Shown here: positions 18,495 through 57,189 of the stretch, one piece after another
Layout: each line of letters starts with the position of its first letter
Numbering within the stretch: the stretch's first letter is position 1
NCBI GenBank assembly: GCA_019828565.1
Contig: JAHDYR010000005.1
Coordinates: forward strand, 335,200-399,199
DNA from: Carpediemonas membranifera BICM
Lineage: Eukaryota > Protista > Fornicata
Length of the DNA: 64,000 nucleotides
Direction: 5' to 3'
The notes under the pieces: model-generated
Told to the model about the DNA's origin: nothing
What the model saw: the letters and a program-made list of their open reading frames with translations, nothing else
The model's database searches: none
Made by a program: the position numbers and the translations under genes

Positions 18495-18508
18495 CCCTCT
18501 TTCCATGC

Positions 18509-21666: not shown

Positions 21667-21739
21667 TGCTGCTTGCCGGGTTCGAACCAGCGACCTTATG
21701 ATCTTCAGTCATACGCTCTCCCAACTGAGCTAAAGCAGC
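21667..21739 (-). tRNA. tRNA-Phe(GAA)
   Basis: 73-nt cloverleaf GCTGCTT TA GCTC AGTTGGGA GAGC G TATGA CTGAAGA TCATA AGGTC GCTGG TTCGAAC CCGGC AAGCAGC A; no encoded CCA. Confidence 0.97.
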
Positions 21740-21946
21740 ATGCATATCATCGATATGTAAGCTATCACGCCTCGGGCGTGGCTCACGCCCTGACACTGCT
21801 GGGTCAGGGTGTGTCAGAACAGGATTCCGGGGACACGAGAAAGATGGCCAAAATATTTAGAAAATCTCGAAAGATATGATTGTGGATACGGTCTTGATCC
21901 GTCCCGATCGCGAGCAGATCGTATCCCTCCAGCAGAAACCGTGAGG

Positions 21947-22486
21947 ATGGCCGAAGGCGACACGGATAACGCTGATCCGCCGCCTGTCACCATGGAGAGC
22001 CTTGCTGAGCTCATACAACAGCAGCAGAACGTCATTACGGCACTCCGTTCGGAGGTTTCATCGGTTAAGGACAGTACACGGGACCCGAGACGCCCGTCTC
22101 GGATAGGAGCCGTTGCTAAGGAGTACGACCACCTCCGCGAGACACTTGCCGACATCAGAGGTATCCTCAACAACCCGGAGATGACGCGCGTCAACCAGAT
22201 CGAAGCCGCGATCGAGGCGGTCTTCGAGCGCAGACTCGAGTTCCTACGGCTATATGACAGCCACTCCGACACCGCTGCGCGCTACTTCATGGCTATTTCG
22301 AGAGAAGAACGAGACGCGCAACGCTTCGTAGTGCTGGCCGCCAAGGCGGCCAAGGCCACCCCACCGCCTCCTCGACCCAAGCGGTTCCAGAGAGGCTTCG
22401 GCGGCTTCAGCCGCAACTCTCCCCGCTTCAACAACAACAACCGTCGTGCCCCGGCAACCGACCTCGGACCGGGGCGGGCCCAGTAG
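21947..22486 (+). CDS. Element F gag-like ORF
   Basis: Coiled-coil; VAKEY...RLEFLRL shared with element I gag. Confidence 0.85.
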   Translation: MAEGDTDNADPPPVTMESLAELIQQQQNVITALRSEVSSVKDSTRDPRRPSRIGAVAKEYDHLRETLADIRGILNNPEMTRVNQIEAAIEAVFERRLEFLRLYDSHSDTAARYFMAISREERDAQRFVVLAAKAAKATPPPPRPKRFQRGFGGFSRNSPRFNNNNRRAPATDLGPGRAQ

Positions 22487-22515
22487 AGGCCAGAGAAGGG
22501 TTAAGCCTGAACCCG

Positions 22516-25500
22516 ATGACTATAAAAGGCTCGATATACTTCGAAGAGTTTGTTTGCAATGGAAAGAGAAGAAGCACAAGAAGATCAGCAAGACACCTCC
22601 ACCCAGTGTATACAGGGGCTGACGGGCTCGATGAGCCATCGGTGGATGAGGTGGGAGGCCCTCGGGGCCAGCAGGGAGGTGGTGCAACTGTTACGAGAGG
22701 GAGTGAAGGTCACCCCGGCAGCACCGGCGCTCAATGCGCACCTCCAGAAGGAGACAGACACGATGAAGGCTCTACTAGAGGAGCTACTGCAACAGAAAGC
22801 AATAGAGAAGGGCGAGGCGACGACAATATGCCCCCTGTTTACATTAGAGAAGAAGATCGCAGGCAGCTACCGTCTGATACACGACCTGAGACCGGTCAAT
22901 GCATACCAAGAGGACCTAACATTCAGGCTGAGGGGCCTAGCAGAGATACAGCATGGCGTTCCGAGAAACTCGTGGGGAATAACATTGGACATGAAGTCCG
23001 GGTACTACCAGCTCCTAGTGGAGGAGAACTCACGACAGGAACTCGGATTCTCGTTCGAGGGAGAACAATACAGATGGAGAGGACTCCCTTTCGGCCTCTC
23101 AACGGCGCCACGGCAGTTTCAGTCGGTTACGTCACAGATGGCGAAGATCTTGCGCTCACTTCTCGAAGGACTGATAATATACGTGTATCTGGACGATCTG
23201 CTCATAATCAGTCGCTCGAGAGTGTCGTTGAGCGCCCAGGTCCCACGGATCTTAGAGATCTTGGACTCACTTGGAGTCGTCCTATCGAGAGAGAAGTGCC
23301 ACTTGACCCCGTCCCAGAGGGTAACTTACTTGGGCGTGATAGTCGACTTGCGCGAGATGACGATGTCGCTGCCAGAGGAGAAGAGGGCTCAGTACAGCAG
23401 TCTCATAGCCAACCTGCAACTCAAGAGACACACAAAGCGGGACCTTCAGACCCTTCACGGAAAGCTACTCTTCTGCCGGTTCGCACTAGGGACGCGGGCA
23501 CTTGTCCGGCTCAGAGAGCTGCAGGTCAGGATCGCTGGCTGCGACGACCGAGTGCGGTACCCAAAGTCCAGCCTGCCCCAGGACCTACGAACGGACCTGC
23601 GGTGGTGGGCCAGACAGCTATCATCCGATCCGGCATGGTACTTCGGCCCAAGAGGCCAGGTACTTCGTATGGAGACCGACGCGTCGGACTATGCGTTCGG
23701 CGCGACGCTGTTTGTCGAAGACACGTCCCTCAACATCCAGGGCAGGTTCTCAGAGGCACAATGCTCCAAGAGCATCAACGCGAAGGAGCTATGGGCAATG
23801 GAGGAAGGCCTGCGGAGATGGACGAGCGACATTCAGGAGAGGGACCTACTCCTAGCCGGGGACAACACATCAGCGCTTTCATGGGTCCTGAAGTCAAGCA
23901 CCAGAGCCCCCCGACACATCAGAAGGACGATTGTGAAGCTTCACGACTACTTGTTCGAGATTGGCTGCAGGATAAGAACCAAGCACATTCCAGGGAGATA
24001 CAACACGACTGCCGACGGGCTGTCCAGGTACCGGAAGCTGGACTGGAACTCACCCGCGGCGATGCTCCAGAGCGCGCTGGAACGATGGGGGTCAGTAGAC
24101 CGATCACTCTTCTGCGCGGAGAGATTCCTGCCGGAGGACCACGACTTCCAGACGGACGCATTTACATGCAATTGGTCAGAGATGAGGTCATTGGCGGTCC
24201 CACCAGTCAGCCTACTGGACAAGGTCATCGCCAGGGCGGAGGAGATCGCCACGTCAGACGAGACGCACCCCGCACTGCAGCAGAGAGGCCTATTAGTCAT
24301 CGCACCACAACGCAGGACGAACTCCAACGCCAGACTGGCAGCCATAGCACAGGACTGGTTCGAGGCAGCGTTCCCGACCAGCTGGTGGGCCCACACGGAG
24401 ATAGGGAGCCTCTTCACAGGCAAGCAGAGAGCGACGTTCATAGCCTACTGGATCCCGATCGCCACAGAGACCTCGTCCTCACAGCCGGGGGAGTCCTGCA
24501 ACAGAGAGCGAGAGAACGTATCGCCAGCGGAAGACAGGAGGAGCACAGGTGGCGAAGAAGCCCCAGAGAGTTCGAGACAGGCCTCAGAGATCAGATACTC
24601 GGAGCAGCACTCATCAGGGACCGGGAACGGAGCACCCGAGAGCGCATAGCCGTGGAGACGGCAAAGTACATCAGTTTTGCAGAACGTATGATGGAGGAAG
24701 AGGAGGAAGCTGGAGAGAACAGAGACACGGTAGGAGCAAGGGCAGAAACAGCCGTTTTCCTGGGCGAGATGGCACAACGCATTAGGGACGCAGACTGGAG
24801 AGCAGAAGTCGAAGAGATCGCACAGATGGCGCCTGATGACGACTACCTCCTACACTACATGATACAAGAGATCCCTTTCATTGCCAAGGACACATTCCTC
24901 GTCAAGGAAGCAAATATCAGGACTGGCCTAGAGTCGATCAACCATGGTCTGGAGAGCTCACCCATCCACAGGGCTCTTATACGCGCGTGTGCAAGAATGG
25001 CCGGCAAGTGCGAGCTCACTGTGGGTCGTAAGACTGGAAAGGCATACCCGGTGACAGTCGAGCAGCTGAAGAGAGCAGCAGCCGCGGCGCGCAAGACCAA
25101 GTCACCGGCGCTCACGCAGGCAGTAGCCTTCGGACTGACGTGCTTCTCCACCGTCAGCAGATCAGGGGAGATAATGAGCTTACTCACGACCGACGTTCGG
25201 CGGGTGAGAGAGGGCTACGAGATCACTATTCGAAGATCCAAGACCAGGGATGAGCCCATGGTGAAGCTGATCCCACTACTAGCAGCAGGAGGCTTAAGCC
25301 CAGCCAAGTGGCTGAGAGCACACCTCAACGACATTCAGACGGAAGGACCCCTGTGGAGATCCATACAGCACACCGAGAGCCTGCTGAGAGACAACTGCCT
25401 TCCACTGACAGCAACAAGGTGGCGCAGATGGGAGATGATCATGGACGTCAACGAGGTCTTCAAGGCAACAGGACACAGCTTCAGACGTGGAGCCGTCGTT

Positions 25501-25632
25501 CACATGATCGATGAAGGGCGTTCCCCATTGGTTATTCAGGCACTAGGAGGCTGGAAGTCGATCGATTCGGTGAATAGATACTGTGAAGAGGCCATTCGAA
25601 TCTCACAGCATGCTCTGCAGAGAAGAACATAG
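22516..25632 (+). CDS. Element F YR ORF, overlapping RT
   Basis: 1038 codons from an ATG; SRSGEI, GHSFRRG, GGWKS...RY. Confidence 0.9.
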   Translation: MTIKGSIYFEEFVCNGKRRSTRRSARHLHPVYTGADGLDEPSVDEVGGPRGQQGGGATVTRGSEGHPGSTGAQCAPPEGDRHDEGSTRGATATESNREGRGDDNMPPVYIREEDRRQLPSDTRPETGQCIPRGPNIQAEGPSRDTAWRSEKLVGNNIGHEVRVLPAPSGGELTTGTRILVRGRTIQMERTPFRPLNGATAVSVGYVTDGEDLALTSRRTDNIRVSGRSAHNQSLESVVERPGPTDLRDLGLTWSRPIEREVPLDPVPEGNLLGRDSRLARDDDVAARGEEGSVQQSHSQPATQETHKAGPSDPSRKATLLPVRTRDAGTCPAQRAAGQDRWLRRPSAVPKVQPAPGPTNGPAVVGQTAIIRSGMVLRPKRPGTSYGDRRVGLCVRRDAVCRRHVPQHPGQVLRGTMLQEHQREGAMGNGGRPAEMDERHSGEGPTPSRGQHISAFMGPEVKHQSPPTHQKDDCEASRLLVRDWLQDKNQAHSREIQHDCRRAVQVPEAGLELTRGDAPERAGTMGVSRPITLLRGEIPAGGPRLPDGRIYMQLVRDEVIGGPTSQPTGQGHRQGGGDRHVRRDAPRTAAERPISHRTTTQDELQRQTGSHSTGLVRGSVPDQLVGPHGDREPLHRQAESDVHSLLDPDRHRDLVLTAGGVLQQRARERIASGRQEEHRWRRSPREFETGLRDQILGAALIRDRERSTRERIAVETAKYISFAERMMEEEEEAGENRDTVGARAETAVFLGEMAQRIRDADWRAEVEEIAQMAPDDDYLLHYMIQEIPFIAKDTFLVKEANIRTGLESINHGLESSPIHRALIRACARMAGKCELTVGRKTGKAYPVTVEQLKRAAAAARKTKSPALTQAVAFGLTCFSTVSRSGEIMSLLTTDVRRVREGYEITIRRSKTRDEPMVKLIPLLAAGGLSPAKWLRAHLNDIQTEGPLWRSIQHTESLLRDNCLPLTATRWRRWEMIMDVNEVFKATGHSFRRGAVVHMIDEGRSPLVIQALGGWKSIDSVNRYCEEAIRISQHALQRRT
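22559..24649 (+). CDS. Element F RT-RNaseH-MT
   Basis: YLDD; TDASDY, INAKEL, ADGLSR; MT-like WGSVD...DAF..NW....AVPP. Confidence 0.93.
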   Translation: MEREEAQEDQQDTSTQCIQGLTGSMSHRWMRWEALGASREVVQLLREGVKVTPAAPALNAHLQKETDTMKALLEELLQQKAIEKGEATTICPLFTLEKKIAGSYRLIHDLRPVNAYQEDLTFRLRGLAEIQHGVPRNSWGITLDMKSGYYQLLVEENSRQELGFSFEGEQYRWRGLPFGLSTAPRQFQSVTSQMAKILRSLLEGLIIYVYLDDLLIISRSRVSLSAQVPRILEILDSLGVVLSREKCHLTPSQRVTYLGVIVDLREMTMSLPEEKRAQYSSLIANLQLKRHTKRDLQTLHGKLLFCRFALGTRALVRLRELQVRIAGCDDRVRYPKSSLPQDLRTDLRWWARQLSSDPAWYFGPRGQVLRMETDASDYAFGATLFVEDTSLNIQGRFSEAQCSKSINAKELWAMEEGLRRWTSDIQERDLLLAGDNTSALSWVLKSSTRAPRHIRRTIVKLHDYLFEIGCRIRTKHIPGRYNTTADGLSRYRKLDWNSPAAMLQSALERWGSVDRSLFCAERFLPEDHDFQTDAFTCNWSEMRSLAVPPVSLLDKVIARAEEIATSDETHPALQQRGLLVIAPQRRTNSNARLAAIAQDWFEAAFPTSWWAHTEIGSLFTGKQRATFIAYWIPIATETSSSQPGESCNRERENVSPAEDRRSTGGEEAPESSRQASEIRYSEQHSSGTGNGAPESA

Positions 25633-26310
25633 AATATAGGACATAAGAGAGCATTGTAGCGATAAAGGGAGATGAAACGGAACGAGGGGAAAAGAATCAG
25701 GCAAGAGTTAGAGAAATGGATGTTTCTCGGATTCGGAACAGGAATTACATATGCCACGTATAACCGGCACAGAAGGTCATAAGTGCAGTAGAGGAAGGCT
25801 CAGGGGTACCATCGCAAGGTTAGATGGCGGGATGCATCAATTTGGAATAGTCGATTATCGTCGACCAAATGGTCGGCATATCATCGATATGTAAGCTATC
25901 ACGCCTCGGGCGTGGCTCACGCCCTGACACTGCTGGGTCAGGGTGTGTCAGAACAGGATTCCGGAGACACGAGAAAGATGGACAGAATATTTAGAAAATC
26001 TCGAAAGATATGATTGTGGATACGGTCTTGATCCGTCCCGATCGCGAGCAGATCGTATCCCTCCAGCAGAAACCGTGAGGATGGCCGAAGGCGACACGGA
26101 TGACGGGCCAAGGCCGCCAAACGGAATATAAATTTGATTAGATCAATTTGGAATAGTCGATTATCGTCGACCAAATGGTCGTTGGCAAGGCCAGCGGAGC
26201 CAAAACTTCGGCGCGAGAGGTCGAGGATGATTCGATACGATCTCAAAGACGGGATCGTGCGTCTCATAAGGGCGGTTCAGTTGTTCAAGAGCGAACTGAA
26301 ACAGATGGGA

Positions 26311-26412
26311 TGTGGGTTCGTGAGAACAAAGCTTTACAAAGAATAGAGCTCGACACCCATGTGTCGAGCTGGACGACTCAAGACTATTAAATAATCTATT
26401 GATGAACCAACA
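26311..26412 (-). repeat. 3' LTR (102 bp)
   Basis: TG...CA; copy at 32342-32443; internal hairpin AGCTCGACAC-4-GTGTCGAGCT. Confidence 0.95.
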
Positions 26413-27176
26413 CTTCCCTCCCATGCTCCGGTAGAGCATCAAAAAACTCAACACTATTATGAAGGGTGTGCTAGGTGCTTGGTCCGGGTGAATTGCCCAG
26501 ATACAAGCTCCAGTAACCGTCGCTTCCATGGGGACTCGCCATGGAGCCGGAGTTGGCAATGGACTAAGCCCTATTGCCTGAACCGTTGTGAGCTCGGGAC
26601 TTTCGAGTTCATCGGATACCCGTTGACCAGACTGGCTATAAAAACCCTGTGTCTTATGCCCGGCGTGATGTCCAGTCACGTTTCTGAGATATGCTTACCT
26701 CACTACCAAATCTAAATTACCTAATATTATCTGATCAAATCTTGCGTGGTACCACTGTATTAGCGCGCTATGTTATGGGTATCCTTACCTGGGGTCCTGC
26801 CCTCTTGAAAGTCTTTGAAACATACCCGACGATTCTGAAAGGGTCAAATGGCGCACTTTTAGGTGCCATCGATGTCCCCATGTCAATTCTTACCAGAGGT
26901 TGGTTACATTCCGCCTAATCTTACACGGCGTTCAAAAAACGGGTTAAGAGGCTCCAATTCCTTCTCGTTCGCGAGATATGGCACTTTTTCGTTTTGCACC
27001 GCCGGAAACACTTTTTGGATCCCGAAAACGCGGCTATATTGAATAACAACATCAGTTCCACCATGTAAACAACTCTATGTTCCACTTCTGAACAGCATTG
27101 TTGCGTAACCATTGCGTTTCATCGATTTCGCATTTTTTGCTTTCTGGAAAGTCGACTTTCTAGACGATCACAGCTC

Positions 27177-28298
27177 ATGGGGGATTTCGACGCCGCTGTG
27201 GAAACTATTCTAAATCGTCTTACGACTAACACTTCGAGAATGCAATTTTGCCGTCTCCTCCGTCGCCATATCTCTGAAACTGGTTCCTACCTCGAGCTGT
27301 TCACCCCTTACCAGCCGCGACGTGCTCCTAGGCGCCAAAACGTCCCTAATGTCCCAGAGGAACTTGCTGGCGCCGTAACCAGTTCTGCATCTGACAGCGA
27401 GAGCGTTAACGCCGTCGACCTACGCTACCTTCCGGCTTCTCCTGACCCAACCGACAATGAGTCTGACTCCGAGTCGGACGACACCCCGCCATCCCTCTCT
27501 GGCTACGTGGAACTCGTCACCCGGCAGGCAGTCAGCTACTACTGGAACTCTCCCCGGACTGAGTTACTGCTGCTCACCGACAACCGGCTGCACTCTTACA
27601 CCCGCGCTTCCGCTGCAGTGCACTCGCATGACGCCGGCGCTGATCTCTGCCGTGACGCTATCGTACTCCAGGCGATGTCGGCTTACCTCTCCATACGTCG
27701 CGATTCGACTGATGCTGCCATCGTTTCAGCCTACCTCACTGCTGTTCGAGACAAACGCGCGTATGTGCCGAACGCGCTCAAGCAAGAGATCGAGAATCGC
27801 TCTGGCCTCAGCATCGTCACCATGCGTCCTCATGTCTTCCGTGCTGTCATGCTCGGCCACGATGTCAACCTATATTTTGTGCTGCACATGGGAGAGGCCC
27901 TCGGTATCCTCACCCGCGCTGATTGCGCTGAGTTCGCTCGTCAGTACTTCGCTCGCATGCGTAGCGGCGCTTCCTTCGACGACGCAGAGTTCAGTCTTCT
28001 GTCAGGCTTCATGCCGGTTACTGCTGACCGCGCCCCGTCGCTGACTCTGCAAGACATGACTTCTGCAGCCTTCACGGTCTCGCGTGTTTGGCATTATCGT
28101 TTTGACGCCCCTGGTCTTCTGCGCCTGCATGTCAGTTATGAGGAATGCCCCAATGTGAGCAGCATTGCCATCGCTACTCGGCGCATGCAGACTCACCCTG
28201 CCGTTGCCCAGTTCCTCACTGAGCATCTGTCTTACGAGTCTTACCTCGCCGACGACGTTGCCCTCGATGGTAACGTCCGTTGTGACACTTGCGAATAA
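27177..28298 (+). CDS. Antisense accessory ORF of the gypsy element, unknown function
   Basis: 373 aa ATG-to-stop, convergent with pol, inside the LTRs; chromo-like C-terminus. Confidence 0.75.
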   Translation: MGDFDAAVETILNRLTTNTSRMQFCRLLRRHISETGSYLELFTPYQPRRAPRRQNVPNVPEELAGAVTSSASDSESVNAVDLRYLPASPDPTDNESDSESDDTPPSLSGYVELVTRQAVSYYWNSPRTELLLLTDNRLHSYTRASAAVHSHDAGADLCRDAIVLQAMSAYLSIRRDSTDAAIVSAYLTAVRDKRAYVPNALKQEIENRSGLSIVTMRPHVFRAVMLGHDVNLYFVLHMGEALGILTRADCAEFARQYFARMRSGASFDDAEFSLLSGFMPVTADRAPSLTLQDMTSAAFTVSRVWHYRFDAPGLLRLHVSYEECPNVSSIAIATRRMQTHPAVAQFLTEHLSYESYLADDVALDGNVRCDTCE

Positions 28299-28323
28299 AC
28301 AGTTTCTGATGCTTGGGGGCCAT

Positions 28324-31300
28324 TTATTCGGCCTTCCCCAGATATATATCCAACGCTTCGCATCCCTTAACGTTCTGGTACGGCTCCCACGTATCTTCCG
28401 AAGGCTCGTACCCTGCCCATCGGACGTGGAACTGCCGATCGCTGAGTCTGCGCTCATGCGTTGCTTCGTATATCGACTCCACGACATACTCGCCGATCGT
28501 CACTGCTGCTAGCTCTTGGGCATGTTGCATGGACAGCTCGCCTGAAAATGGTCTGACCCTCTCGGACGCGACCTGGAATTCGGTCCTCGTATTGACATCT
28601 CTAACCCAGTAACCAACAGGAAAGTCATTCCTCATGATAGGCTGGATCAGTTGCATGGGGCCTCGCCACCCTGCAGCCAACTTTGATGGTGGCCCATTCG
28701 GGTATTTGACCAATACAAACTCAGACGTAATTGGTTCAGGAGGGGGCAGCTTGCTGAGAGCGTCAGCGTGCATTGCCTTAATACGTGCTTCAGCGAGCTC
28801 TCGAGCGAGTTTGGCAGCAGCTACGTTGCTCGCTGGTTGGCTGACCGCCTTCTCACCCAGTTCTTTGACGATTAGCATGTCGGCCGGTACGCGCAGATCA
28901 CTACCAAAAATCACCTCTGCTGGGGTTAAACGCGTTGCTGAGTGTGGTGTCGCGTTGACAATGTACTGTGCGACTGGCAACGACTCCGACCACAGCTCCG
29001 ACCTCAGCTCGTACTGCCGCGCCCTCAGAATACGCTCGACTCTGCTGTTCGCTCGTTCGACCACTCCATTTGACTGTGGATGATATGGAGTGGTTGTATG
29101 GATTGAAAAGCCAACTCGGACGGACAAGTCCTTGAACAGCTTGTTGACAAACTGCTTGCCTCCGTCTGTTTGGAGGACTCGAGGGACTCCATACCTGAGT
29201 ATCCACTGGTCAGCAAATGCTCTGACAGCTTCGTCGGCTCTCGTTGTCTTCAGCGGAATGAGCTCGGTCCACCTCGAAGCCATATCGACTACTACTAAAA
29301 TGAACTTGTATCCGAGCGACTCGGGCAACGGACCGATAGTGTCCATTGCTACCTTCATGAACGGCCTGAGTCCGGCTGTATGTAAGTATGCCCTGGCGGC
29401 TTCAGCTGGTTTTTGCTGTGAGTTGACATACCGGACATCTGTCGATCACCCTCGCCACCTGATCCACGGGCGCCCTCTTGCCATGTGTCCTCAAGAATTG
29501 TATCGTGGTATGCAGTGGCAGGTGAGCTTGCCCGTGTCTGTGTGCCTCAGCTATCTCCGTCTCAGACGCCACTGGCAACCGATCTGCCGATGCCGCAAAC
29601 ACGCGACTGAGACCATCGGCTGCACTGTTATCCACTCCGGCCACATGTTTGATCGTGAAATCAAGATCAGATATTGATTCGTACCACCGTTGAACCTTGG
29701 AGTTGGAAGAACGCGACATAAACACAAGATTGCGATGATCAGTCAGCAATGTGAATGGTGTCCAACACAAGAACCTGCGCCACCTCTGCAACGCGGAAAC
29801 GATTGCATACGCCTCCTGTTCAATTGTGCTCCATCTCGTCTGCACATCGTTGAAAGACTTGGACATGTATGACACCGGCTTACCGTCTTGTAGCAACACT
29901 CCGCCAATTCCAAGGTCTGACGCGTCAGTCATGACGACGTGCTCACGGGTAACATCGAAGTGTTCGAGGGCGGGAGCCTGACACAGCAGATCTTTGACCT
30001 GCGCCAAAGCCTCGACCTGATCGCTGCCGTCGGGAGGTGCCTTGCCACACGCGGCTTGAGCTAAAGGGTGCACGATCCTCGAAAAACCTGGCACAAAATC
30101 TCTCATGAAGTTCAAGAATCCCATTAGGGCTTGAGCGGCCTTCTTCGTCTTCGGGACACGCAGCGTCTCAACATCCCGAATGCGGTCTGGCGCAATTCTA
30201 AATCCTGTACCCGACACCACCCAGCCTAAGAACTCGACTTCTGCGAGTCCAAAGTGTGACTTCTCCTTGTTGAGGCTGAGTTTCAACTCTTCGGCCCTCG
30301 CCAACACCTTGTTCAAGTTGGACAAGTACTCTTGCTCTGTGCGGCCGAAAATTATAATGTCGTCAATATATATGATACACGCGGTACCAAGTAGATCGTG
30401 GAATCCCCGTTCAATTGCAAACTGGAAATGCGCCCCAGCGTTTTTCAATCCAAACGGCATGCCCGTATACTGGAACTTGCCTCGTGGGGTCTGGAACGCA
30501 GTGTATTGTCTCGACCTTTCGGACAACTTGACTTGATGATAACCCTTCGAAAGGTCAATCGTGGCGAAGATCTTAGCTCCTGCCAACCGTGCGAGGCACG
30601 CTTGAACCTCTGGGATCGGGTAATCAAACGGCTCAGTCAGGTCGTTGATCCTTCTGAAATCGACAACCATACGAGTTCTGTCTCGGCCCTTCGGGACGAG
30701 GAGAGCTGGGGACGAGTACGGAGAGAAACTCGCCTCAATATACTTCTTGGCTAACAGCTCCCGGACGTGCTCATCAAACAGACCCTGCTTCTGGTGAGGG
30801 ATGTAATTTGACCTGGACGCTACTACTCGGTCCTCCTTCAAGATCAGGTCATAAGGCTCTAAGGCAGAAAACCCCTCACGCTCCTCGAAGCAACGGCTGA
30901 ACTTGGCGATGATTCGCGCATGCATCGCTGTAAAATCTGTTGACATAGTGTAGGACTGCATCGCGTCCATTGGGGGGACGGACGGTTCCATATCGTCAGA
31001 GTCCCGGCTCGCTTGAGATTCCGCGACACTGGGCAGGATGCCCCACTCAACCATCGTTGGGTACGACAATAGAAGGTCGTAGATGCATTCAACTCCGTAT
31101 GCGGCGACAGTAGTCGACAGTGCCTTTGGAGTGAAAGGTGACTTATGCATGAGAAGGGGAATCTCATAGCAAACGTCGGACTCAATAGATCCCCCTGGAG
31201 TCTTGATGACGATAGGTTGACTGAGCTTCGTCGGAATAAGTTCAGCAGCGGTTGCCGACTGGGGGTTCACCAAGCAAATATCCGCCCCGCAGTCGAAAAG

Positions 31301-32326
31301 TACACGCTCCCATTGCACACTGTGATCATTACCGACCGGAACCTCTGCTGTTACTATCGGGAGCGCGTTGCTGTGTGTCTGACTCAACGATGTCAGGACA
31401 TGAGCGGGTGCACGAGAAAAGGATGAACAAGCCTGGGGGTTTACTGAAGTACCCCGACAGAACTTGTCTTGATGTCCCTGCTTACCGCACTTGCTGCAGA
31501 CAGTCTTCGGGTTCCGACACTGGCGCGATGTGTGACCGGACTTGCCGCAGTTGTAGCACACGATGGTACGGCTGGTGCTCTGATGATCGGTGCTTGAGCC
31601 GGTCTGCTGACTTCTCTGCATTTCAGACTGGGCTCCCCGGTACTGGTGCTTGCCATGAGACTGGTGCTCACCCGGGTGAGGCGGGCCGCCCTGTCGGCGC
31701 AGACCTCGAGAATGGCTTGCGCGCTGGTCCTTAGGAGGGCGGTTTCGAGGCTGAGAATCGGACTTGATGGTCCTGGAAGTAATCATCGCAGCCTCTTGGA
31801 GACGCTTGCACGTCTGGAGAGCGACCTGGATGGTGCTGTTAAGGTCAAGCCCTGTAGCCGCCTCCTTGACCTCCCTACGGAGGTCCTCGTCCTGGATTCC
31901 CTTCACGAACATGCTGCGCATCACGGCGTCGGAGAAAGAGGGAGCCAAGACGGCCTTGCGGCTGATGAATCTGTCGGCATAGAGTGAGAGACGTCCCACG
32001 TCAATACCCTGGGTCGTTAGCTGGAAAAGACGGCGCTCTAGGATCGGATCAGTGGGCTTAATTGCGTTAGCAATCGCTCTGAAAACGAGGTCCTCTCTCT
32101 CATGTTTCTTACGCTTCTCGCCCGTCACTGTGTTGTGCTTCGCGCTCTTGTACGTCTTGGCTACGTCTACACCAACTGCTGCACAGTATGAGGTGACAGC
32201 CGGACCCAAACGCTTGATAAGTCGGCGTTTTCCGCCCGTTCGGACATGGCGATCGAGTTTCTCCTTAAACGAAAGCAGAGCATTAATCTCTGGTTGAGTA
32301 CATAACGGACCCTTGTCCTCAGTCAT
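28324..32326 (-). CDS. Gag-Pol (gag, PR, RT, RH, IN, chromodomain), one frameshift at an A5 run near 29412
   Basis: Two zinc knuckles, FDCGA, YIDD, TDAS, HHCC, DTIGP..TDGG..QSNGVVER, WRGP, VRWAGYEPSEDTWEP. Confidence 0.95.
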
Positions 32327-32341
32327 TGTAAGTAACGTTAC

Positions 32342-47476: not shown

Positions 47477-47663
47477 GGGGTTAGTGATAAACGGATGATG
47501 ATGCTAGAGTTGCTGTGGGTCTTTGGGGGACTGGCATATTCATTGGCGACTGGTGCCCTATGGGATATAGACGTAGTCTACCGGACCGTCTGCCCAGTCA
47601 GACGCTCAGGCGCCATCCGCAGAAGAGAGAATTTCAGCGCTCGAAAGTAAGTACGAAGCAGCG

Positions 47664-48146
47664 ATGACGGCCAATGTAGAGCTTCTCACCAAGATCCAGT
47701 ATCTTGAAGAAGAGAACGCCGATCAACAGCTGAAACCCAAAAAGGATGTCGTCGCGAAGGAGTACGAGGCCTGGCAGAAGTTCCTACGCGAGTTCAAGCG
47801 TGATGCAGCCAACCTCCCAGAGGATGCCACCTTTGGAGACCTCATAAGCCTCGTCAAGAACAAGGTTGATTTTCGCCTCGAGTTCCTGCGGCTCGTCGAC
47901 GAGTTTGGCGAGACAACAGCGCACGAGTTCAGCTTCTCGGCAGCAGGCATCAGAGGCCGCAATGCGCTACACGAGGCGGCCATGAAGGCCGCCAAGATCC
48001 GCATTGGTCTGGAGCCCAAGCGAGCCGGCTACCCCCAATCCAGGGGCAACAAGAACAAGACAAGACCGAGATGTTCGTTCTGCGGGCGCCCGAATCACAA
48101 GGAGGATTCTTGTTGGGTCAAGAATCCCGCCTTGAAGCCGCAGTAA
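47664..48146 (+). CDS. Element I gag-like ORF with zinc knuckle
   Basis: VAKEY...RLEFLRL; CSFCGRPNHKEDSC. Confidence 0.85.
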   Translation: MTANVELLTKIQYLEEENADQQLKPKKDVVAKEYEAWQKFLREFKRDAANLPEDATFGDLISLVKNKVDFRLEFLRLVDEFGETTAHEFSFSAAGIRGRNALHEAAMKAAKIRIGLEPKRAGYPQSRGNKNKTRPRCSFCGRPNHKEDSCWVKNPALKPQ

Positions 48147-48152
48147 AAGGGT

Positions 48153-50168
48153 TTGGTTTGCCAGATTTACACAGCTATCCGCGAAAACAGCATGCTATCG
48201 CTTCAAGACTGGGCGTCCCGGTTTGCGAAAGCTTCAGAGGAGAACAAGAAGCCTGTTGTTGGCTCAATCACGCGCTCTGCTGCAGTTTGGGAGCGGATTT
48301 CCCCACCAGCAGAGGTTCTCGCGGCTGTCCGAGGAGTGCGGATCGATACAGATCGAATCCCGACACTCGACGAATACCACGTCCATCCACGGCTGATACA
48401 TCTTCTCAGAGCGGAGATTAACGAGCTACTGGCGAGCGGAGCTGCCCAAAAGGTCGATGAACGGCCGGCAGTCGTGAGCCCCATATTCCTGACCCCAAAG
48501 AGTGACGGGGAGACCTGGAGGCTCATACACGACCTCCGAGGCATTAACGAGCACATAACAGCACGAAAGTTCTCCATGCGCGGCCTACACGAGGTGGCCG
48601 AGACAATGCAGGAGGGAGACTACATGGTAACCATTGACTTCGAGAAAGGCTATTACCAACTTCTGCTGGACCCAGCCGACAGGACCAAGGCCGGATTTGA
48701 ACTTGATGGCAACTGGTACGTGTTTACAGTGCTTCCCTTCGGCCTGTCCACGGCCCCGAGAGCATTTCAATCCGTGTCGAAGTTCGCGGCGAGGTGCATC
48801 GCAAGCAGGCTTAACGTCCGCATCGTCGAACACCTCGATGATTGGATCATCATGCCGCAGAACAAGGACCACCTCAAGGCTATCCTGCCTGGCTTCCTAA
48901 ACCTGCTCACGTCATTCGGCATTGTTGTTAGCCAAAAGAAGGCGAGATGGGTGCCGAGCAGGATTCAGGAGTTCTTAGGCGTCGTAATCGATTCAGCATC
49001 CATGAAGTTCCGCTTAACAGACGAGAAGACGGACAAGTACCGCACTGCGGTTCAAAACCTACTGAAAGAACGCAGATTCTTAGTCAAAGACCTCTACAAG
49101 ACCATCGGGAGGCTCAACTTTGCTGCAACATGCCTAGGACCGGCGGCCCTGGTGCGTTGCCGAGAACTTTCGATCGTCGCCTCCAACATACGAGACGGCT
49201 TCCGCATGGACCGCGACACACTGTCGGAAGCAGCGGTGCAGGACCTCAATTGGTGGGTGGACAAGCTCCGGCGCCCGCCGGCCAGGAAGTTCATCGCCCC
49301 ACAGCCGACAATGCGAGTCGATACAGACGCCTCCGACCACTGGGCTGGTGCGGTCATGTTCACACAGGACTTCTCAACCTGGAAAACCGAGTTCTCCCGC
49401 GAGGAGGCCAAGCTCCACATTACCGCGAAGGAGGCCCTCACAGCGATGTGGGCAGTGACGTCGTTCCTGAGAGGCAGGCCACCCAGCACTGTCTTACTAA
49501 TGACAGACTCCATAGCCGCCAAGAAGTGGACGATCAAGTCGGGCACCAGAGCCCCGGCCATCGTGAGGGCAGAGGCCAGGAGGTTCGCGGACTACATGAT
49601 GGAGGGCGGGCACACACTGGTGGTCCGGCACATACAGGGGCGGCTGAACTGGACGGCCGACAGGCTGTCACGCCCTGGGCCAGGATTCTCCCTCGGAAGA
49701 GAGGTCCCGACACAGCTCCTGCTGGAGATATCACGCCGGTGGGGGGCCCTCGAGCGCGACCTATCGGGGTCGGCGGCAGAAGCCTTCCTCCTCGACTGGC
49801 AAGCAGGACGGTCACTCCTGTGCCCGCCATACAAGATGCTGAACAGAGTCGTACAGCGTCTGCACTCAATCCACACAACAGCCGCAGTGCAGCCCGCGCT
49901 ACAGGCCACGGGGTGCTGTCTGGTGTACGTCGAGGCGAGGGGGTCGAACGCATCAATCGAGATCAGGAGGATGGCCCAAGCACACTTCCAACGGACGTTC
50001 CACAAGCTGTTCCTACAGATCAAGTGGGAGGGCTATTTACAAGAGGAGTCGTCATGGGAGCCCTTCGCAGCCCAGTTGGATGAGCTGCAAGCCCTTGATC
50101 GTTACCTGGAGGAACATCCACAGCTGGCGCAGAAACTACCAGCACAACGCAGAAGGAATGATTACTGA
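48153..50168 (+). pseudogene. Element I RT-RNaseH-MT joined near 50010 to a half chromodomain
   Basis: WRLIHDL, EHLDD (mutated YLDD), TDAS, CPPY; ends IKWEGYLQEESSWEP...ALDRYL. Confidence 0.85.
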
Positions 50169-50519
50169 TGTTGATTAGTGGTCGTTGAGCGAATGCAAGC
50201 CCGTATGACGCCTAAGCGCCAACGCCTCGCATGGGGGAAGGGAATTGGCGAGAACTCGTGAACGAGAGCTCGTTGAAGGCTCTAAGTGTCTTTTTTGGAC
50301 ACCATGTGCCGACAGTAGTATCCGACGAAGCTTATCGCGAGTATTCATGAGGTCGATGTTTTGGCGACCAATTTTGAACGGATCAAATTTTGTTCAGAGA
50401 AACAGAAGGTCCGGGACATGCCACCCTCCGGTTATCCTGTGGGGGAAGTGTGATAGACATTTGATTTTAACTCAATCGACTCAGGACTTTTAAAGACACC
50501 CAACTTGTTTCTCTGCTAA

Positions 50520-53240
50520 GTGTTGCCACAAGTGTTAGCTGCGCTGAATGGTGTGAGCATAGATGCAGATGACGTCCAGGAGGGATATATAACAACATCT
50601 GCTCGGTCCAGGAATGAAGGTCTCCTCAGAAGCGAGATTGACAGCCTCCTGTCGATTGGCGCCATCGTTAGAGTAGAGACGAGGCCAGAGGTCATAGCGC
50701 CGATTTTCCCCCTCCCCAAGACAGATGGCGTGAACTATCGCCTGATACACGACTTAAGAGATGTTAACAGGGAGCTGGAGGTCAGAAAGTTCTCTATGAG
50801 AGGACTCGAGGAGGTGGCGGAGACGATACGCCCCAACGATTTCATGGTAACCATGGACATGAGCAAGGGGTATTACCAACTGCTTCTAGACAAGGAGAGC
50901 TCCCACAAGGCAGGCTTTGAGTTCGACGGGAAGTGGTACGAATTTCGAGCCCTCCCATTCGGCTTTGCCACGGCGCCGAGAATATTCCAGTCAGTCTCCA
51001 AGCATGCGGCCAAGTTCATCGCGAGCAAGCTCGACCTGCGCATCTGTGTCTACTTAGACGACTGGATGGTCCTCGAGCAGGATAAGGAGAAACTGCAGAG
51101 GTTGCTCCCAGACTTCATCAATCTGGCCACCTCACTGGGAATAGTTCTGAATACGGACAAGTCATCATGTATACCTTCGCAAGAGCAGGAATTTCTGGGA
51201 GCCGTCGTCAATTCAAGAGAGATGTGCATCAAACTCACCGAAGCCAAGCGCAAGAAGTACAAGAACGCCGTGGACAACATTTTAAGAGAAAGAAGGCTCT
51301 TTATAAGCGAACTAAGCCGGCTGGTCGGAAGACTGACCTTCACCAAGGTGTGCTGCAGCACAACAGCGCTCATCAGGGTCAGGGAGCTCTGCATCGCCAC
51401 AAGGTCTCAAGAGGAGCAAGAACCCCAGAGCCACTCGAGGATGCCTCTCAGAGGCAGCGATAGCGGACCTTCAGTGGTGGAGCCGCAAGCTGGAGACGAT
51501 CCCGAGCTGCCCGATCAGACCACCCAGGAGCGCCACAATAAGGGTAAAAGGGGAAATGGCATAGACTGGAGGCTTATTCATGACCTAAGACCCGTGAATG
51601 CGGTCATAGAAGCCAAGAAGTTCTCCATGCGCGGACTTGAGGAGGTCCGAGAGACCCTGAGGCCCGGAGATTCCATGGTGGCCCTTGACTTCAAGAGTGG
51701 CTGTCACCAGCTGCTCCTGGACCAGCGAGACAGATACAAGGCAGCGTTCGAACTGGACGGCGTATACTATCAGTTCAACGCCCTCCCGTTCGGACTCTCG
51801 ACAGCGCCTAGAGCGTTCCAGACAGTATCGAAGCACGCAGCCAGGTTCATCGCGAACAGCCTGGACCTGCGCATATGCGTCTATCTCGATGACTGGCTCA
51901 TTATGCATCAGGATCGCGAGGTTCTGAGAGAAAAGCTGCCGCAGCTTATCAACTTGATGACTTCATTCGGCATTGTACTTTCAGCCGTCAGCAGAGAAGT
52001 GCTTATGGCAGCCATCAACGACGCAGGAGTTCCTAGGAGTGGTCGTAGACTCCGTATCCATGTCATTCACTCTAACAGAAGAGAAGAGAGACAAATACAG
52101 CCGAGCAGCAGAACAATTCCTCAGAAACAGGAGATTCACGCTCAAGGAGCTGAAGAAGACCATAGGCCGCATGATATTCACAAAGGCATGCATAGGATAC
52201 GTCGCGCTCGTACGTGTGAGAGAACTAACAATCATAGCCCGGGAGCTAGAGAGGAAGAAGATATGGAGGGCGAAGAGAGCCTCCATCAACCAACACGCCC
52301 TGGAGGACCTACACTGGTGGGCCAAGATGCTCAGGGACCCGAGGGAGCAGGCCCTAATCCCACCAGACTTTCAACACCGAGTGGAGACAGACGCGTCATC
52401 CACATACGCAGGAGCCACAATCTTCAGCCAGACGGGAGCTCAGGCATCGTGGACGAGACGGTTCAACAGACAGGAGCTGCCCCTACACATCACAGCGAAG
52501 GAGGCCCTGGGCGCCATGCTGGCGATCCAAGTCCTGGTGGGCCCGGCCCCCGCATCCTTAATATACGTGTACACAGACAACACAGCTGCACGAAAGTGGC
52601 TCACAAGCTCCAGCACAAGAGCGCCCGTGTCAGTCAGGCGCCAAGCCTGCACACTCCACGACTGTTTAGTATCAAGAGGACACCAACTCGTCGTGAGATA
52701 CCTGCCCGGTCGCCTAAACTGGACCGCAGACGCCTTATTAAGACCAGACGGGGCACAGATCCCACACTGGGTGCCAGACAAAGTACTCAGAGCGATAGCC
52801 CGCAGATGGGGCGCAGTGGACCTGGACCTCACAGAAGCAGGCTTCAGTCTGCTGGAGGCGTCATGGGACGGCAGGATACTGGTGTGTCCGCCTTACAAGC
52901 TGCTCGGTCGGGTCGTGCTGAAGCTAGCACAGCTAACAGTGCGCTCCCCGCACCCACCCGCGCTGCAGCAGAGAGGCTGCGCCCTCATATACGTGGGGAT
53001 CAAACACAACCACAACATCACCATCCGGAAGATAGCTCAGCAAGCTTTCACAGTCAACATCCCCAAGAGGTCAGCACCACGAGAGTGGAGCGCCCTGGCA
53101 GGGCAGAGATCCAGCATCAACGTCCGAGTAGCCTGGATCCCACTCTAAGGGCGGCAGGAGTAGTCGTCACAGCAGACAGGGAACCCCCACTCACCGAGGA
53201 GGCCATTAGACTGTCGCCTCAGTTCACAGCGCTTACGATG
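50520..53240 (+). pseudogene. Two joined I-like RT fragments (50520-51540; 51550-53148) plus start of a YR region (J)
   Basis: RLIHDL and YLDD each occur twice; the second copy continues to RNase H and CPPY. Confidence 0.85.
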
Positions 53241-53499
53241 CCGGCGGCACGGGATGGATGAAAACATCTTGTTGCCTATCTGCGGAGCAGCCGTTGGGAT
53301 CGTACGCAGTGCGGGACCATGCGGATCCCCAGTCGCCCGTCCGCGGGGCGGAGCTTGGCGGCGGAGTGGCGGCCAGACTGAGCGTCCTCCGCCGAATGGC
53401 ATCTCGCGTCGGAGCGCCACGTGCGCCCCGGGGCCCTTGGTGCTCGGTGTGCAGTTTATGGTCAGGCTTATCCTGCACCACAGATTGCGCGAAAAGCCG

Positions 53500-54408
53500 A
53501 TGTCCGTCGAAGAACGTCTGGAAGCACTCGAAAAGAGCAACAAGGAGCAAGAAGAGGAAAATGCTACTCTCAGAGCCGAATTGGACTATCTTCGCGAAGC
53601 ACGCGATGAGCTCGATGATCCTCCGCACTCAGAAGTCATTTTGAAGGAGTTCAAGGCCTGGAACCACTTCTCCACTGAAGTCAAACGGGAAATTATGGCT
53701 TTGGACGAAGAAGCTACGACTGGCGAGGTCTCCCAGTTCATATCCCAGCTGGCGCAGCAGCATGCCAAGCAAGCTAGGTCCGGACCAAGAGGCCCTGCGG
53801 TTCCTATCCGCGCGCACATCATCATAGACCGCTGGGGCTCGGCCACGCCCGAGCAGAGGGCCGACCCCTGCTGGCTGCAGGCCTTCTACTTCGGCGTCAT
53901 CACTTACGTCACGACATCAAGGCCTGGTGAGATCTTCTCGCTGACTCCGGCAGACGTCTCCGGCAGACCAGGTCGCGGTCTGAGGGTCTGCATCCGTCGG
54001 ACTAAGACCGGCATGACGAACGTGTACAAGGTGGTCCCGAGGCTGGGCGATGCCCCCTTCTGCCCGGCCACTTGGCTTCACGCCCATGCTCGTAACCTCC
54101 CTAGTAGCCAGCATCTCTGGCGGGCCCCTGCCAATATCCGAGGAGACCTATCACTGTCGACTGAGGTGTCCTATGCCGTGTTCGAGGACCAGGTTAGGGA
54201 GGTCTTCGGCAAGGTGACGCGATTGCACGGATTCCGCAGAGGATCAGCCGCCGACCTCCTCCTGTGTGGCATCCCAGTAGAGGTTGTCGCCGCGAAGGGC
54301 ACCTGGGCGACGACGGTGAGCCTTATCCGCTATGTGGGCGATACCCTGCGCCTTGATGGCGCCTCCTCCGCAACCCCACTGAGGAGAATGTTTAGAGAAG
54401 AAGAGTGA
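53500..54408 (+). pseudogene. Chimeric ORF: I-like gag N-terminus fused to G/H-like YR
   Basis: VILKEFKAW (gag) then GPAVPIRAH, SRPGEI, LHGFRRG, KGTW...IRY. Confidence 0.8.
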
Positions 54409-54648
54409 TATAGTCGACTATGGCGATTGAGGAGTCGCCGTGGTCGACACCGTTGAGAGTCCCGAGGGACTAACGGTAAATGAGCTGATATCAACTAAGT
54501 TTTGGGTCCGACCGGGACAACCCCATGGTTTTAGAGCAGCGAGACTGCCTAGTCGTCTGCACGTCAGACTGTTCAGGCCCAAGGGAGCCAACGTCAACTC
54601 GGCTAGCGTGGCCGACGGTATTTAGATTCGATTACGATTTGCCGGAGA

Positions 54649-56280
54649 GTGCAGGATCGAATCGCAGCGCCGTGTCCTGTCTTCCGCCTGCACGGCCTCA
54701 AGCGAGCCGTGGCCATGCTGTCTCCATCCGACTACATGTTACGCCTCGACCTCACAAAGGGCAATTATCAGTTGGGTGTCTGTCCACAAGACCGGGACCT
54801 TCTCGCGTTTATGGTAGACGGAAGGCCCTACAAGTTCAACTGCCTTCCGTTCGGGTGGTCCTCTGCCCCCTCAGTGTTCCAAGCCACGATGTTAGCAGCC
54901 GCCACCGTCATGTCGAAGCGCTATCAGGTCCGAATTGTCGTATACTTGGACGACTGGCTCATAATCGGCCCTCGCGAAGTCCTGAGCAGGGTAGGCCACC
55001 ACATCACTGCCGCCCTAGCTGCCATGGGAATTCTGATCAACCGCCAGAAGAGCCTCCTCGAGCCATCATCATCTACAACTTTCTTGGGGTTCGAGATCGA
55101 TGCGCAGAACAGAACAATATCCCTCTCGGACAAGAAGTGCAGCAAATACTTGTCAAGAGTACGGAATATGGCATCAATCATCCCATACAAGGACTCGGAG
55201 AGCTGGAAGCAACTCCTAGGCAACCTATCATACGCCTCCTTGGCGTGGAGCGACGGACGCGCCTGGCTACGACCACTACAAGCCTATCGAGGTCATCAGA
55301 GCTGACCAGCTGCCCAAAGGGCCCTCCAGGAGTGGCAGAACAAGCTACTTGCTCCAACTCCGCGTCCATTCGACGACCTCCTAGCAATATGGGGCACGAA
55401 TGGTTCCCTAGACATCACAGTCTCGACGGACGCGGCCACGGGATCGATTGGAGGCGTCATAAGGATACCTGGTCTCCGCGACGAGTCCTTCTCCCTCCAC
55501 CTCCCGCCTCAGCACAGCCAAGAACACATCACTGCTCAAGAGTTCTTCGCAATCGACCACACCCTACGGCGCCTGGCCCAGATCCCACAGGCACAAGGCT
55601 GAGAGGTGACTGTATACTCAGACTCAACGGCGGCGGTGTCGTGGATCAACCGACAAGGCTCCGCCAAGGCCCCATCATCCGTCATCCAGGCACTCCTTCA
55701 CACCGTCCCCCTGCTGGCCTCGCTCCACATATCCGTCAGAGCTGTCTACGCCCAGGGCCGGCTCAACGTCTCTGCGGACGCCCTGAGCCGGTTCGCCAAG
55801 CTCGACTGGCGCACACCCAGATGGATCCTACATACAATCATGCAGGCATGGGGCCCGGTGGAGTTCGACGCTTCAGGGCACCCCGAGAAGGACCTTCTCA
55901 TTCCGGGGTTCGCGGGCGAGTCAAAGTCATTTTCGCAAAACGGTCTCCAGAGCGATTGGCAAGGACATCGAGTGTTCGTTGCTCCTCCATGGGCAATGTT
56001 GCCTCAAGTAGCCGCAAATGCCTCAAGGCTCGCAGTTCCTCTGCGGATTTTGAGTCCTCGCGCCACAAAGTCGGCTCTTATCATTGTGTGCCCTGATATC
56101 GCCGCCGCCGCGGTCCTCATGCTGCGGAGAATGGCCAACGACAAGCGAACGTTCAAGATTCCAGCAGAACAGCTTCGCGGCTCGGAGTTAGAGAAGCTCG
56201 AGACGAAGGGCAAAGTTCGGATGCTGGCCTTGTTCATTCGGACGAGGTCTTCCGCTCCGCAAGCACACATCCAGTTCTAG
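54649..56280 (+). pseudogene. 5'-truncated YR-element RT-RNaseH-MT (K), frameshift near 55290
   Basis: YLDD, SDS, NVSADALSR, WGPVEFDA...DW...VAPPW. Confidence 0.85.
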
Positions 56281-56310
56281 CGGGCTATTCCGAGTCCTAT
56301 CGCCGCCATA

Positions 56311-56990
56311 TTGCAGGAACGAGAAGCGATCGTTCCGGCTCCGAGGTATCAGGCAGGCCATCTGCCAGATGCGAGAGGACGACTACATGACGCGCATCGA
56401 CCTGACAAAGGGGTACTATCAGCTGGGCATCCGACCGCAGGACCGGACACTCCTGGGCTTTGTGGTAGACGGGCGCCCCTACTGCTTCAACGTCCTGCCG
56501 TTTGGATGGAGCGCGGCACCCTACCACTTTCAACGGGTCATGATGACCGCCGGACAGATTGTCGCGCGTGCCTTCCCGGGTATCAATCTGACGATATACC
56601 TAGACGACTGGCTTTTCTGCGGTCCGAAAGCCCTGTTAGAGTCGTCGATGCCGGGGATAGTTCGGTTGCTTACGGACCTAGGCCTCGTAATCAACCGGGA
56701 GAAGACCCAGTTGACACCATCGCCCACGACGACGTTCCTTGGCTTTGTGCTAGACTCGGCGAGGCAGGGTGTCTCCCTTCAAGAGGAGAAGCGCCACAAG
56801 TACCTGTCCAGAGTGGAGGAGGCTCTCCAGCAAGGCGTCACCTTCCACAGCCTCAAAGGCTCCTCGGGAACCTGGGTTTTGCGTCGATAGTCTGGCCAGA
56901 GGGCCGGGCGGCCATCAGACCAATACAGCGCTGCTTGGCCAACATCAAGTCTCGTTACAGGACGAGAGTCCATGGCGAGGCAGAGGAGGA
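56311..56990 (+). pseudogene. G-like RT fragment
   Basis: VDGRPYCFNVLPFGW, FPGINLTIYLDD; frameshifted. Confidence 0.85.
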
Positions 56991-57189
56991 CTTTCCTTTG
57001 GAACCTTCATTTGGATGGACTGATGTTGGTTAATGATGCTTCTCCGCCTGTAAATAACCTTTCTTTGTTGTAATGAAGATGTAATGAAGATGTCTAGATG
57101 CTTGTATGATCCATCTTCCCCACACTCCCTTGTTTCCTTTGAGGTTTCACGATGTTTTCACATTTCACGGGCATTTTAAGGAAAACAAC

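Follow-up and report, generated by a model that had tools for sequence, protein, structure and literature searches.

Targeting of tRNA genes by tyrosine-recombinase (DIRS-order) retrotransposons is not described in the papers we could search, yet in the protist Carpediemonas membranifera BICM one tRNA-Phe gene is immediately followed by a head-to-tail series of them. This raised the question of whether these elements are aimed at the tRNA gene and whether their order records the order of their arrival. We examined a window of 64,000 nt (assembly GCA_019828565.1, contig JAHDYR010000005.1, positions 335,200 to 399,199 of the forward strand; positions below are those of the window) together with the rest of the 24.2-Mb assembly. 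An earlier note, made from the sequence alone, had proposed that each new element integrates at the tRNA 5′ flank and pushes older ones outward. Our analysis confirmed the underlying observation, supported this interpretation and extended it to many other loci and to the opposite flank of the gene.

Structure of the upstream stack

The tRNA-Phe(GAA) gene lies at 21667–21739 on the minus strand and was identified using both ARAGORN and Rfam (RF00005, 70.1 bits, the same score as the other tRNA-Phe paralogs). A 2-nt spacer, AT (21740–21741), separates its mature 5′ end from element F (21742–26181, plus strand); F-family spacers elsewhere are 1–2 nt. Element F is apparently intact, with A1 at 21742–21971, a gag-like ORF at 21947–22486, an RT/RNase H ORF at 22550–24649 with YLDD, a YR ORF at 24688–25632, B1 at 25836–25875, A2 at 25876–26105 and B2 at 26142–26181. 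Pfam searches detected RVT_1 (2e-23), RT_RNaseH and Phage_integrase (2e-9; 37.9 bits against a cut-off of 27.1), whereas no Dam hit was found in the 229 residues after RNase H, even at E up to 10. Together with the split direct repeats, this indicates that F is Ngaro-like. At least 12 genomic copies of F showed 98%–100% identity.

A single T (26182), the rest of an original ATT spacer left on the G side when F inserted, separates F from element G (26183–43828, plus strand), which starts with TGGCAAGG; the same 0–1 nt remnants were found at other F/G junctions and at junctions of the F2 family with G. Element G comprises A1 (26183–26302), RT/RNase H (33104–34609; RVT_1 3.4e-18), a YR ORF (42250–43116), B1 (43473–43518), A2 (43519–43638) and B2 (43783–43828), and at least 28 A copies at 100% identity were found in the genome. 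Relatives of G in other assemblies carry PF05869. G is interrupted by two other transposons on the minus strand. A Ty3/gypsy chromovirus (26311–32443; LTRs 26311–26412 and 32342–32443, 99% identical; Pfam RVT_1, RNase H, rve, Chromo and zf-CCHC) is nested at the start codon of G's ORF1, and a full-length LINE (34628–41875; Exo_endo_phos and RVT_1) is flanked by a 14-bp target duplication, CTTGGAGCTCGAGT (34614–34627 and 41876–41889). B2 of G ends with CTGTCTGAC at 43828, and element H (43829–47603, plus strand) starts with TGGTAGG at 43829. The earlier note had placed the start of H at a TGG that ends G; this TGG is more simply the first three bases of H, because G right ends elsewhere are followed by many other sequences without TGG.

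The decay described in the note was verified throughout. Element H has A1 from 43829, RT at 44640–46292, YR at 46592–47344 and a single B end at 47556–47603, and lacks A2/B2. Its stop at 45105 and YLDN at 45213 are both private to this copy, since two other H copies read R and YLDD. The outer elements, all on the plus strand, are fragments. Element I (47604–50200) retains only gag-like and RT/RNase H regions, without YR, and has no close relative in the genome. Element J (50500–54410) has a partly duplicated RT (50625–51395 and 51567–53181), YR at 53791–54354, and only fragmentary relatives at 84%–99%. Element K (54525–56340), with no close copies, contains RT (RVT_1 4e-15), a Dam-like methyltransferase domain (2.8e-6; 27.6 bits, below the cut-off of 28.1), three stops and no YR. 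Element L (56255–56815) is an RT fragment, 95% identical to five other copies.

Targeting of the two flanks of tRNA genes

The association with tRNA genes holds genome-wide. Of 21 F-family left ends, eight abut seven different intact tRNAs at 1–2 nt, two more abut a tRNA-Ala 5′ remnant, and the other 11 abut right ends of stacked YR elements. With about 500 tRNA candidates in 24.2 Mb, a random end lands within 4 nt upstream in one orientation with p of about 4e-5; thus, chance cannot give eight to ten of 21. The G family abuts tRNAs at eight loci at 1–3 nt, giving seven distinct contexts, and the H family abuts two tRNAs at 3 nt. In a sample of 41 tRNA genes chosen by tRNA score alone, 24, covering at least 11 isoacceptor types, carry an upstream-class left end at 1–4 nt. 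At least nine families are involved (first bases GCATATC, GCATACC, GCGTACC, TGGCAAGG in two variants, TGGTAGG, GAGACG, (T)GGTGTTC and TGGCGGGG), and all run antiparallel to the tRNA.

Notably, the elements on the 3′ side of tRNA-Phe, which the note did not cover, belong to a separate clade that targets the downstream flank. Element E (17931–21628, plus strand; A1 17931–18016, RT 18509–19960, YR 20529–21146, A2 21393–21477, right end GCCACACTTTGTGGA; RVT_1 1.2e-23) is separated from the tRNA 3′ end by 38 nt of native flank (21629–21666). Element D (14384–17917, plus strand) is separated from E by 13 nt of native flank (17918–17930), and element C (10650–14379, plus strand; left boundary uncertain) is separated from D by 4 nt. 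YLDD is present in C, D and E, as in F and G. In the sample of 41 tRNAs, 22 carry a downstream-class right end at 11–75 nt. Twelve E copies lie with the right end 11–214 nt from, and antiparallel to, one of only 63 mapped tRNAs, and ten of these are within 75 nt, although one further E copy (C8:27916) lies downstream of a tRNA in the opposite orientation. The RT tree separated (C,D,E) with 98/99 support from (F,(I,J)) and (G,H). The window is therefore a two-sided stack on one tRNA. A Rfam search at E up to 1 found only tRNA-Phe in the window, and a tRNA 3′-half-like remnant at 3686–3728 has no matching 5′ half there.

An assembly artefact or segmental duplication appears very unlikely, although the region is highly repetitive and some tRNA loci share long flanks (six tRNA-Ala(AGC) upstream and four tRNA-Thr downstream). 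Contigs from public sequencing runs cover F's coding region at 98%–99% and one F right end joined to a different flank, but none spans the junctions of the window, and they neither confirm nor contradict the layout. In contrast, the same architecture recurs at dozens of loci on many contigs with different tRNAs, spacers and outer flanks, and nested elements have clean target duplications. The closest foreign RT proteins (47%–49% identity, GCA_002919055.1) and a 29% relative (GCA_024449895.1) lie on short contigs with no tRNA, the left end of the element being cut off in three of the four contigs; this is inconclusive.

Order of insertion and target recognition

One locus shows the order of insertion directly: tRNA-Arg is followed by GCAT, an element X and then ATCATCG of an F copy, so X has split F four bases in. 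A tRNA-like stretch inside a 515-bp X copy was not scored as a tRNA by Rfam. Other junctions lack 1–3 nt of the older element's left end, and outermost right ends run into AT-rich unique flank. Because newcomers cut 0–4 nt into the end of whatever element is already there, the cut site is set by distance from the tRNA and not by local sequence. In the window, in-silico removal of the newer elements placed H at −3, G at −3 and F at −2, and C at +55, D at +51 and E at +38, each of which is family-typical only if the order runs from outside in. We therefore consider, with high confidence, that the tRNA-Phe gene is a landing pad at which new arrivals insert next to the tRNA and push earlier ones outward.

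The age order within the stack rests on this geometry and on a coarse decay gradient. G has two nested transposons and F none, H has two private inactivating changes, and the outer members belong to families with few or no close copies (on the downstream side, at least 25 at about 100% for E, three at 99%–100% for D and none for C). Sequence divergence, however, does not rank the inner elements, as F, G and H are each about 99.7%–100% identical to other copies. H differs from its nearest copy by about 5 mismatches in 3775 nt and F by about 12 in 4440, and A1/A2 identity is 98.3% in F but 100% (120/120) in G; these values are not monotonic with position and were rejected as a clock. H, which equals one circle unit, and J, with its internal duplication, both show later rearrangement. 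A stack that is real but not strictly chronological, through entry between or outside existing members or reshuffling by recombination, is unlikely but cannot be entirely ruled out.

Element-into-element homing, as in Dictyostelium DIRS-1, with the tRNA only incidental or a first seed, could also produce arrays. Indeed, F-F-F and F2-F2-F2 arrays are spaced exactly at the A1–A2 distance (4133 and 4329 nt), as expected if monomer circles enter a resident B/A junction, and junctions between stacked elements resemble circle junctions. Such integration therefore also occurs, but as the main explanation it is improbable: left ends abut many different intact tRNAs, unrelated families stack in many combinations, newcomers cut inside older ends at a fixed distance from the tRNA, and single or solo elements lie between a tRNA and unique flank.

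How the tRNA is recognised is inferred. A circular cDNA carrying the B/A junction might be recombined into the target by the element's own recombinase; all seven alignable copies keep the R-K-H-R-W-Y catalytic residues (R, K, HxxR, W and Y). The recombinase, or a partner protein, might be positioned by the RNA polymerase III complex, as for Ty3 and TRE5-A, and the intact tRNA genes suggest a safe haven. Alternatively, the recombinase or an accessory protein might read conserved tRNA-gene DNA directly (the acceptor and A-box region, or a structure it forms), as prokaryotic integrases probably do. This tentative alternative is consistent with the nucleotide-level precision upstream, with short palindromes flanking every B/A junction in F, G, E and D, as in recombinase core sites, and with the lack of insertions at the five 5S genes found, although these sit in a regular, homogenised 9.5-kb array. 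In contrast, targeted tRNAs differ widely in their first 12 nt, no tRNA-like sequence was seen at element ends, and the variable distance (11–75 nt) of the downstream clade beyond the terminator fits a bulky complex better than a DNA motif. A more speculative and rather unlikely possibility is that two clades have divided the flanks of Pol III genes between them with the recombinase positioned by the Pol III complex itself, and, in one version, that folded single-stranded cDNA ends (the palindromes) recombine at the opened promoter, much as integron integrases use folded attC sites. This would be a new way to aim a tyrosine recombinase without target homology.

Comparison with known systems

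tRNA-gene targeting has arisen several times in LTR and non-LTR retrotransposons, always with DDE integrases or target-primed reverse transcription. The present elements add an independent, mechanistically different case in a compact metamonad genome, and dozens of tRNA loci become ordered stacks in which the relative order of transposon invasions can be read. They raise the question of how a recombinase that normally needs sequence identity is aimed by position alone, and a position-guided, homology-independent tyrosine recombinase would also interest those who build integration tools. Ty3 of Saccharomyces cerevisiae likewise inserts within a few bases of one point just upstream of many different tRNA genes, which stay intact (PMC5911963; PMC6673722). 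However, Ty3 uses a DDE integrase tethered to TFIIIB and makes 5-bp target duplications, whereas the elements described here encode a tyrosine recombinase, make no duplication, have one fixed orientation and cut 1–4 nt from the mature 5′ end. In Dictyostelium, also a protist with a compact genome, separate lineages (TRE5, TRE3 and DGLT-A) occupy the upstream and downstream sides of tRNA genes in fixed orientation, but these are non-LTR or Ty3/gypsy elements inserting about 50 bp upstream or about 100 bp downstream, and the YR element DIRS-1 homes to other DIRS-1 copies (PMC5006619).

With DIRS-order elements (DIRS-1, PAT-like and Ngaro), the present elements share gag-like, RT/RNase H and YR coding regions, split direct repeats (A1...B1A2B2 in F, G and E) with an internal copy of the circle junction, and the absence of target duplication (flanks AT/T for F and T/none for G). 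Known members either insert into their own copies or at sites sharing a trinucleotide with the circle junction (PMC7192593), and, in line with the earlier note, targeting of tRNA genes by DIRS-order elements did not turn up in the papers we could search. Prokaryotic tyrosine integrases of phages and integrative elements, of the same enzyme superfamily, probably also accrete in tandem at one tRNA (cf. PMC8371274), but they appear to recombine inside the 3′ part of the tRNA through sequence identity and to restore the gene. Here, the crossover is outside the gene, on either side, with no evident homology, and the substrate is inferred to be a reverse-transcribed copy. Finally, the note likened the stack to integron cassette and CRISPR arrays, in which new units enter at one fixed end, so that position records order. 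This remains an analogy: there is no sign of a host function, a shared promoter or a dedicated acquisition system, and the order is a by-product of selfish insertion.

Arrangement of elements around the tRNA-Phe gene

The window (G000:C6:335200-399199, i.e., positions on contig C6 of the 24.2-Mb, 69-contig assembly G000) holds one tRNA gene, tRNA-Phe(GAA), located at 21667-21739 on the minus strand. From about 4.4 kb to 57 kb, it is filled with plus-strand elements encoding reverse transcriptase (RT), RNase H and a tyrosine recombinase (YR). Element F runs from 21742 to 26181, has the split direct repeats A1...B1A2B2 and is separated from the mature 5′ end of the tRNA by two bases (AT). One T (26182) follows F, and element G then extends from 26183 to 43828, with A1 and A2 repeats identical at 120/120 positions. 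G contains a Ty3/gypsy element (26311-32443) and a full-length LINE (34628-41875) with a 14-bp target duplication; about ten 52-nt tandem repeats lie inside the coding region of this LINE (39817-40311). Element H starts at 43829 with TGGTAGG, has a stop at 45105 and carries YLDN in place of YLDD. Two other H copies read R and YLDD at these places, and both changes are thus private to this copy. Furthermore, H ends at a single B repeat and has no A2/B2. Elements I, J, K and L are fragments, and in element I a weak chromodomain match (50014-50112, residues 622-653 of ORF 48153-50168; E=1.6e-4, below the Pfam cut-off) was noted at the C-terminus of the RT/RNase H frame. Every statement of the earlier note on this arrangement holds, although the TGG that it regarded as the end of G is more simply interpreted as the first three bases of H, because G right ends elsewhere are followed by many sequences that lack TGG. 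The available public runs do not span these junctions; however, contigs of small public runs (presumably RNA) matched the RT and YR regions of F (22831-26182) at 98-99%, and one joined an F right end to a different flank, which hints at expression and at another insertion site or strain difference.

Association with tRNA genes and order of insertion

The association with tRNA genes is a property of the families. Of 21 F-family left ends, eight abut the 5′ end of a different intact tRNA (Cys, Leu, Lys, Phe, Ser, Arg, Ile) with 1-2 nt between them, two abut a 14-nt 5′ remnant of tRNA-Ala, and the remaining eleven abut the right end of another YR element, whereas none lies in ordinary sequence. 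In the two remnant cases (genomic loci L001 and L014), F abuts only the first 14 nt of tRNA-Ala(AGC), and the gene is broken in the D-loop by unrelated sequence, identically at both loci. G-family left ends abut tRNAs at eight loci at 1-3 nt (seven distinct sequence contexts); most of the rest abut right ends of the F, F2 or X families, and two contexts were not identified. H abuts tRNA-Met and a second tRNA-Phe at 3 nt. To obtain a sample not chosen through the elements, the best Rfam tRNA hits in the genome were taken, and 40 of them were retrieved with 700 bp on each side, giving 41 tRNA genes including that of the window. Notably, 24 of the 41 have the left end of one of nine recognisable families 1-4 nt upstream (3 nt in 11 cases, 2 nt in 6, 1 nt in 4 and 4 nt in 3), all antiparallel to the tRNA. 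Occupied and empty paralogs have the same tRNA scores, so the genes are not damaged. Some of the tRNA genes seem to have been copied together with flanking DNA, as six tRNA-Ala(AGC) genes (loci L100-L105) share at least 700 bp of upstream sequence and four tRNA-Thr genes (loci L086, L088-L090) share their downstream flank.

Direct evidence for the order of insertion comes from split junctions. At one tRNA-Arg, the sequence reads tRNA|GCAT|X element|ATCATCG..., and GCAT plus ATCATCG is exactly the left end of F, so X entered four bases inside an F copy that was already docked. At other junctions, the older element lacks its first 1-3 nt on the side away from the tRNA, and in others 0-1 nt of the old spacer remains beside the older element. 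The cut is therefore placed by distance from the tRNA, whatever sequence lies there. Outermost right ends run into unique AT-rich flank. A stack of two solo forms lies between a tRNA-Arg and unique flank at locus L055 (reverse strand), consisting of a G A-B unit of 313 nt followed by an F A-B unit of about 300 nt; these look like the product of A1 x A2 recombination, analogous to solo LTRs. In locus L020 (about 1740-2270, reverse strand), a 515-bp X-family copy has both ends but no coding region (non-autonomous or internally deleted), and it contains a stretch with A-box and B-box-like motifs that Rfam does not score as a tRNA.

In the window, in silico removal of F leaves G 3 nt from the tRNA, and removal of G leaves H 3 nt from it, whereas F itself sits at 2 nt. 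Each value is the usual offset of that family, which holds only if H came first, then G, then F. The decay gradient agrees at a coarse scale: F, G and H belong to families with many 99-100% copies, whereas I and K have no close relative, and J and L have only partial ones. In contrast, fine-scale divergence does not rank F, G and H. The order of the three inner elements therefore rests on geometry, the two transposons nested in G and the private defects of H. The gypsy family nested in G lies 130-330 nt upstream of three tRNA genes, counting the window (26311-32443) before F arrived, the copy about 195 nt upstream of tRNA-Phe at locus L084 and that at G000:C56:50010; however, most of its roughly 19 copies are not near the 63 mapped tRNAs, and any preference is thus unproven.

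A second class of elements downstream of tRNA genes

The flanks on the 3′ side of the sampled tRNAs are also repeat-covered. Read directly, they show right ends of other YR families 11-75 nt from the tRNA 3′ end in 22 of 41 genes, again antiparallel. These right ends read ...GCCACACTTTGTGGA, ...GGCTAGGACAGCTAGC and ...GGCTAGCCTAGTCTAGC, among others. The first of these is element E of the window (17931-21628), which ends 38 nt from tRNA-Phe. E has at least 25 copies at about 100%, twelve of which lie with the right end 11-214 nt from one of only 63 mapped tRNAs, ten of those within 75 nt. One further copy (G000:C8:27916-30155) lies downstream of a tRNA with its left end, not its right end, toward the gene, and this is the only orientation exception seen. 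Elements D (14384-17917) and C (about 10650-14379) follow, separated by 13 and 4 nt of native flank, and their original insertion points were therefore +51 and +55. D has three close copies and C has none, so age again rises with distance. In an RT tree, C, D and E form a clade with 98/99 support, apart from (F,(I,J)), (G,H) and K. The window is therefore a two-sided stack on one tRNA gene, built by two lineages with different target sides. A separate earlier note on a stack of elements A to E pointed to a broken tRNA, and a tRNA 3′-half-like remnant (T-arm, acceptor strand, T5 run) does lie at 3686-3728 on the minus strand, although ARAGORN and Rfam do not call it and no matching 5′ half was found in the window. 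However, the genome-wide behaviour of E places C, D and E with the tRNA-Phe 3′ flank.

Another repeat family, starting with GTCTGAC(T/C)..GCAGACGCC, occurs at a constant 54-62 nt upstream of otherwise empty tRNA genes (loci L077, L098, L111 and L055) and at about 250 nt at locus L099. Read in reverse, its end resembles the right ends of the X and H families, and it may represent a third targeted class in the opposite orientation.

Possible mechanism and relation to known systems

The elements have the anatomy for which a circular cDNA intermediate is proposed (PMC7192593), in that the internal B1|A2 junction repeats the joint of the two ends. The recombinases keep R, K, HxxR, W and Y. Short palindromes sit on both sides of each B|A junction in four unrelated families, as in recombinase core sites, although their folding energies are only 1.9-2.2 sd below shuffles, and not at all for G. 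Targeted tRNAs share little sequence near the cut, spacers and outer flanks show no motif, and newcomers cut into foreign element ends. We therefore infer, without direct demonstration, that position is given by a protein complex on the gene, most likely the Pol III machinery, as for Ty3 and TRE5-A. Five 5S rRNA genes (G000:C23:8851-47168), spaced regularly 9.54-9.56 kb apart and probably within the rDNA unit, carry no inserted elements.

Literature searches found no report of tRNA targeting by YR retrotransposons and no account of the transposons of this organism, although most subscription journals were not covered and an older report cannot be excluded. Reviews and primary papers on Pol III-targeted retrotransposons list LTR and non-LTR elements only, and describe DIRS-1 as self-targeting (PMC5006619; PMC5911963; PMC13269885). 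Entry into resident copies also appears to occur here, since head-to-tail arrays of F (spacing 4133 nt) and F2 (4329 nt) were found at G000:C6:513857-522351 and G000:C26:192066-201048. The spacing equals exactly the A1-A2 distance rather than the full element length, as if monomer circles had entered resident copies, indicating that, in addition to docking at tRNA genes, circles also enter resident elements in the way described for DIRS-1.
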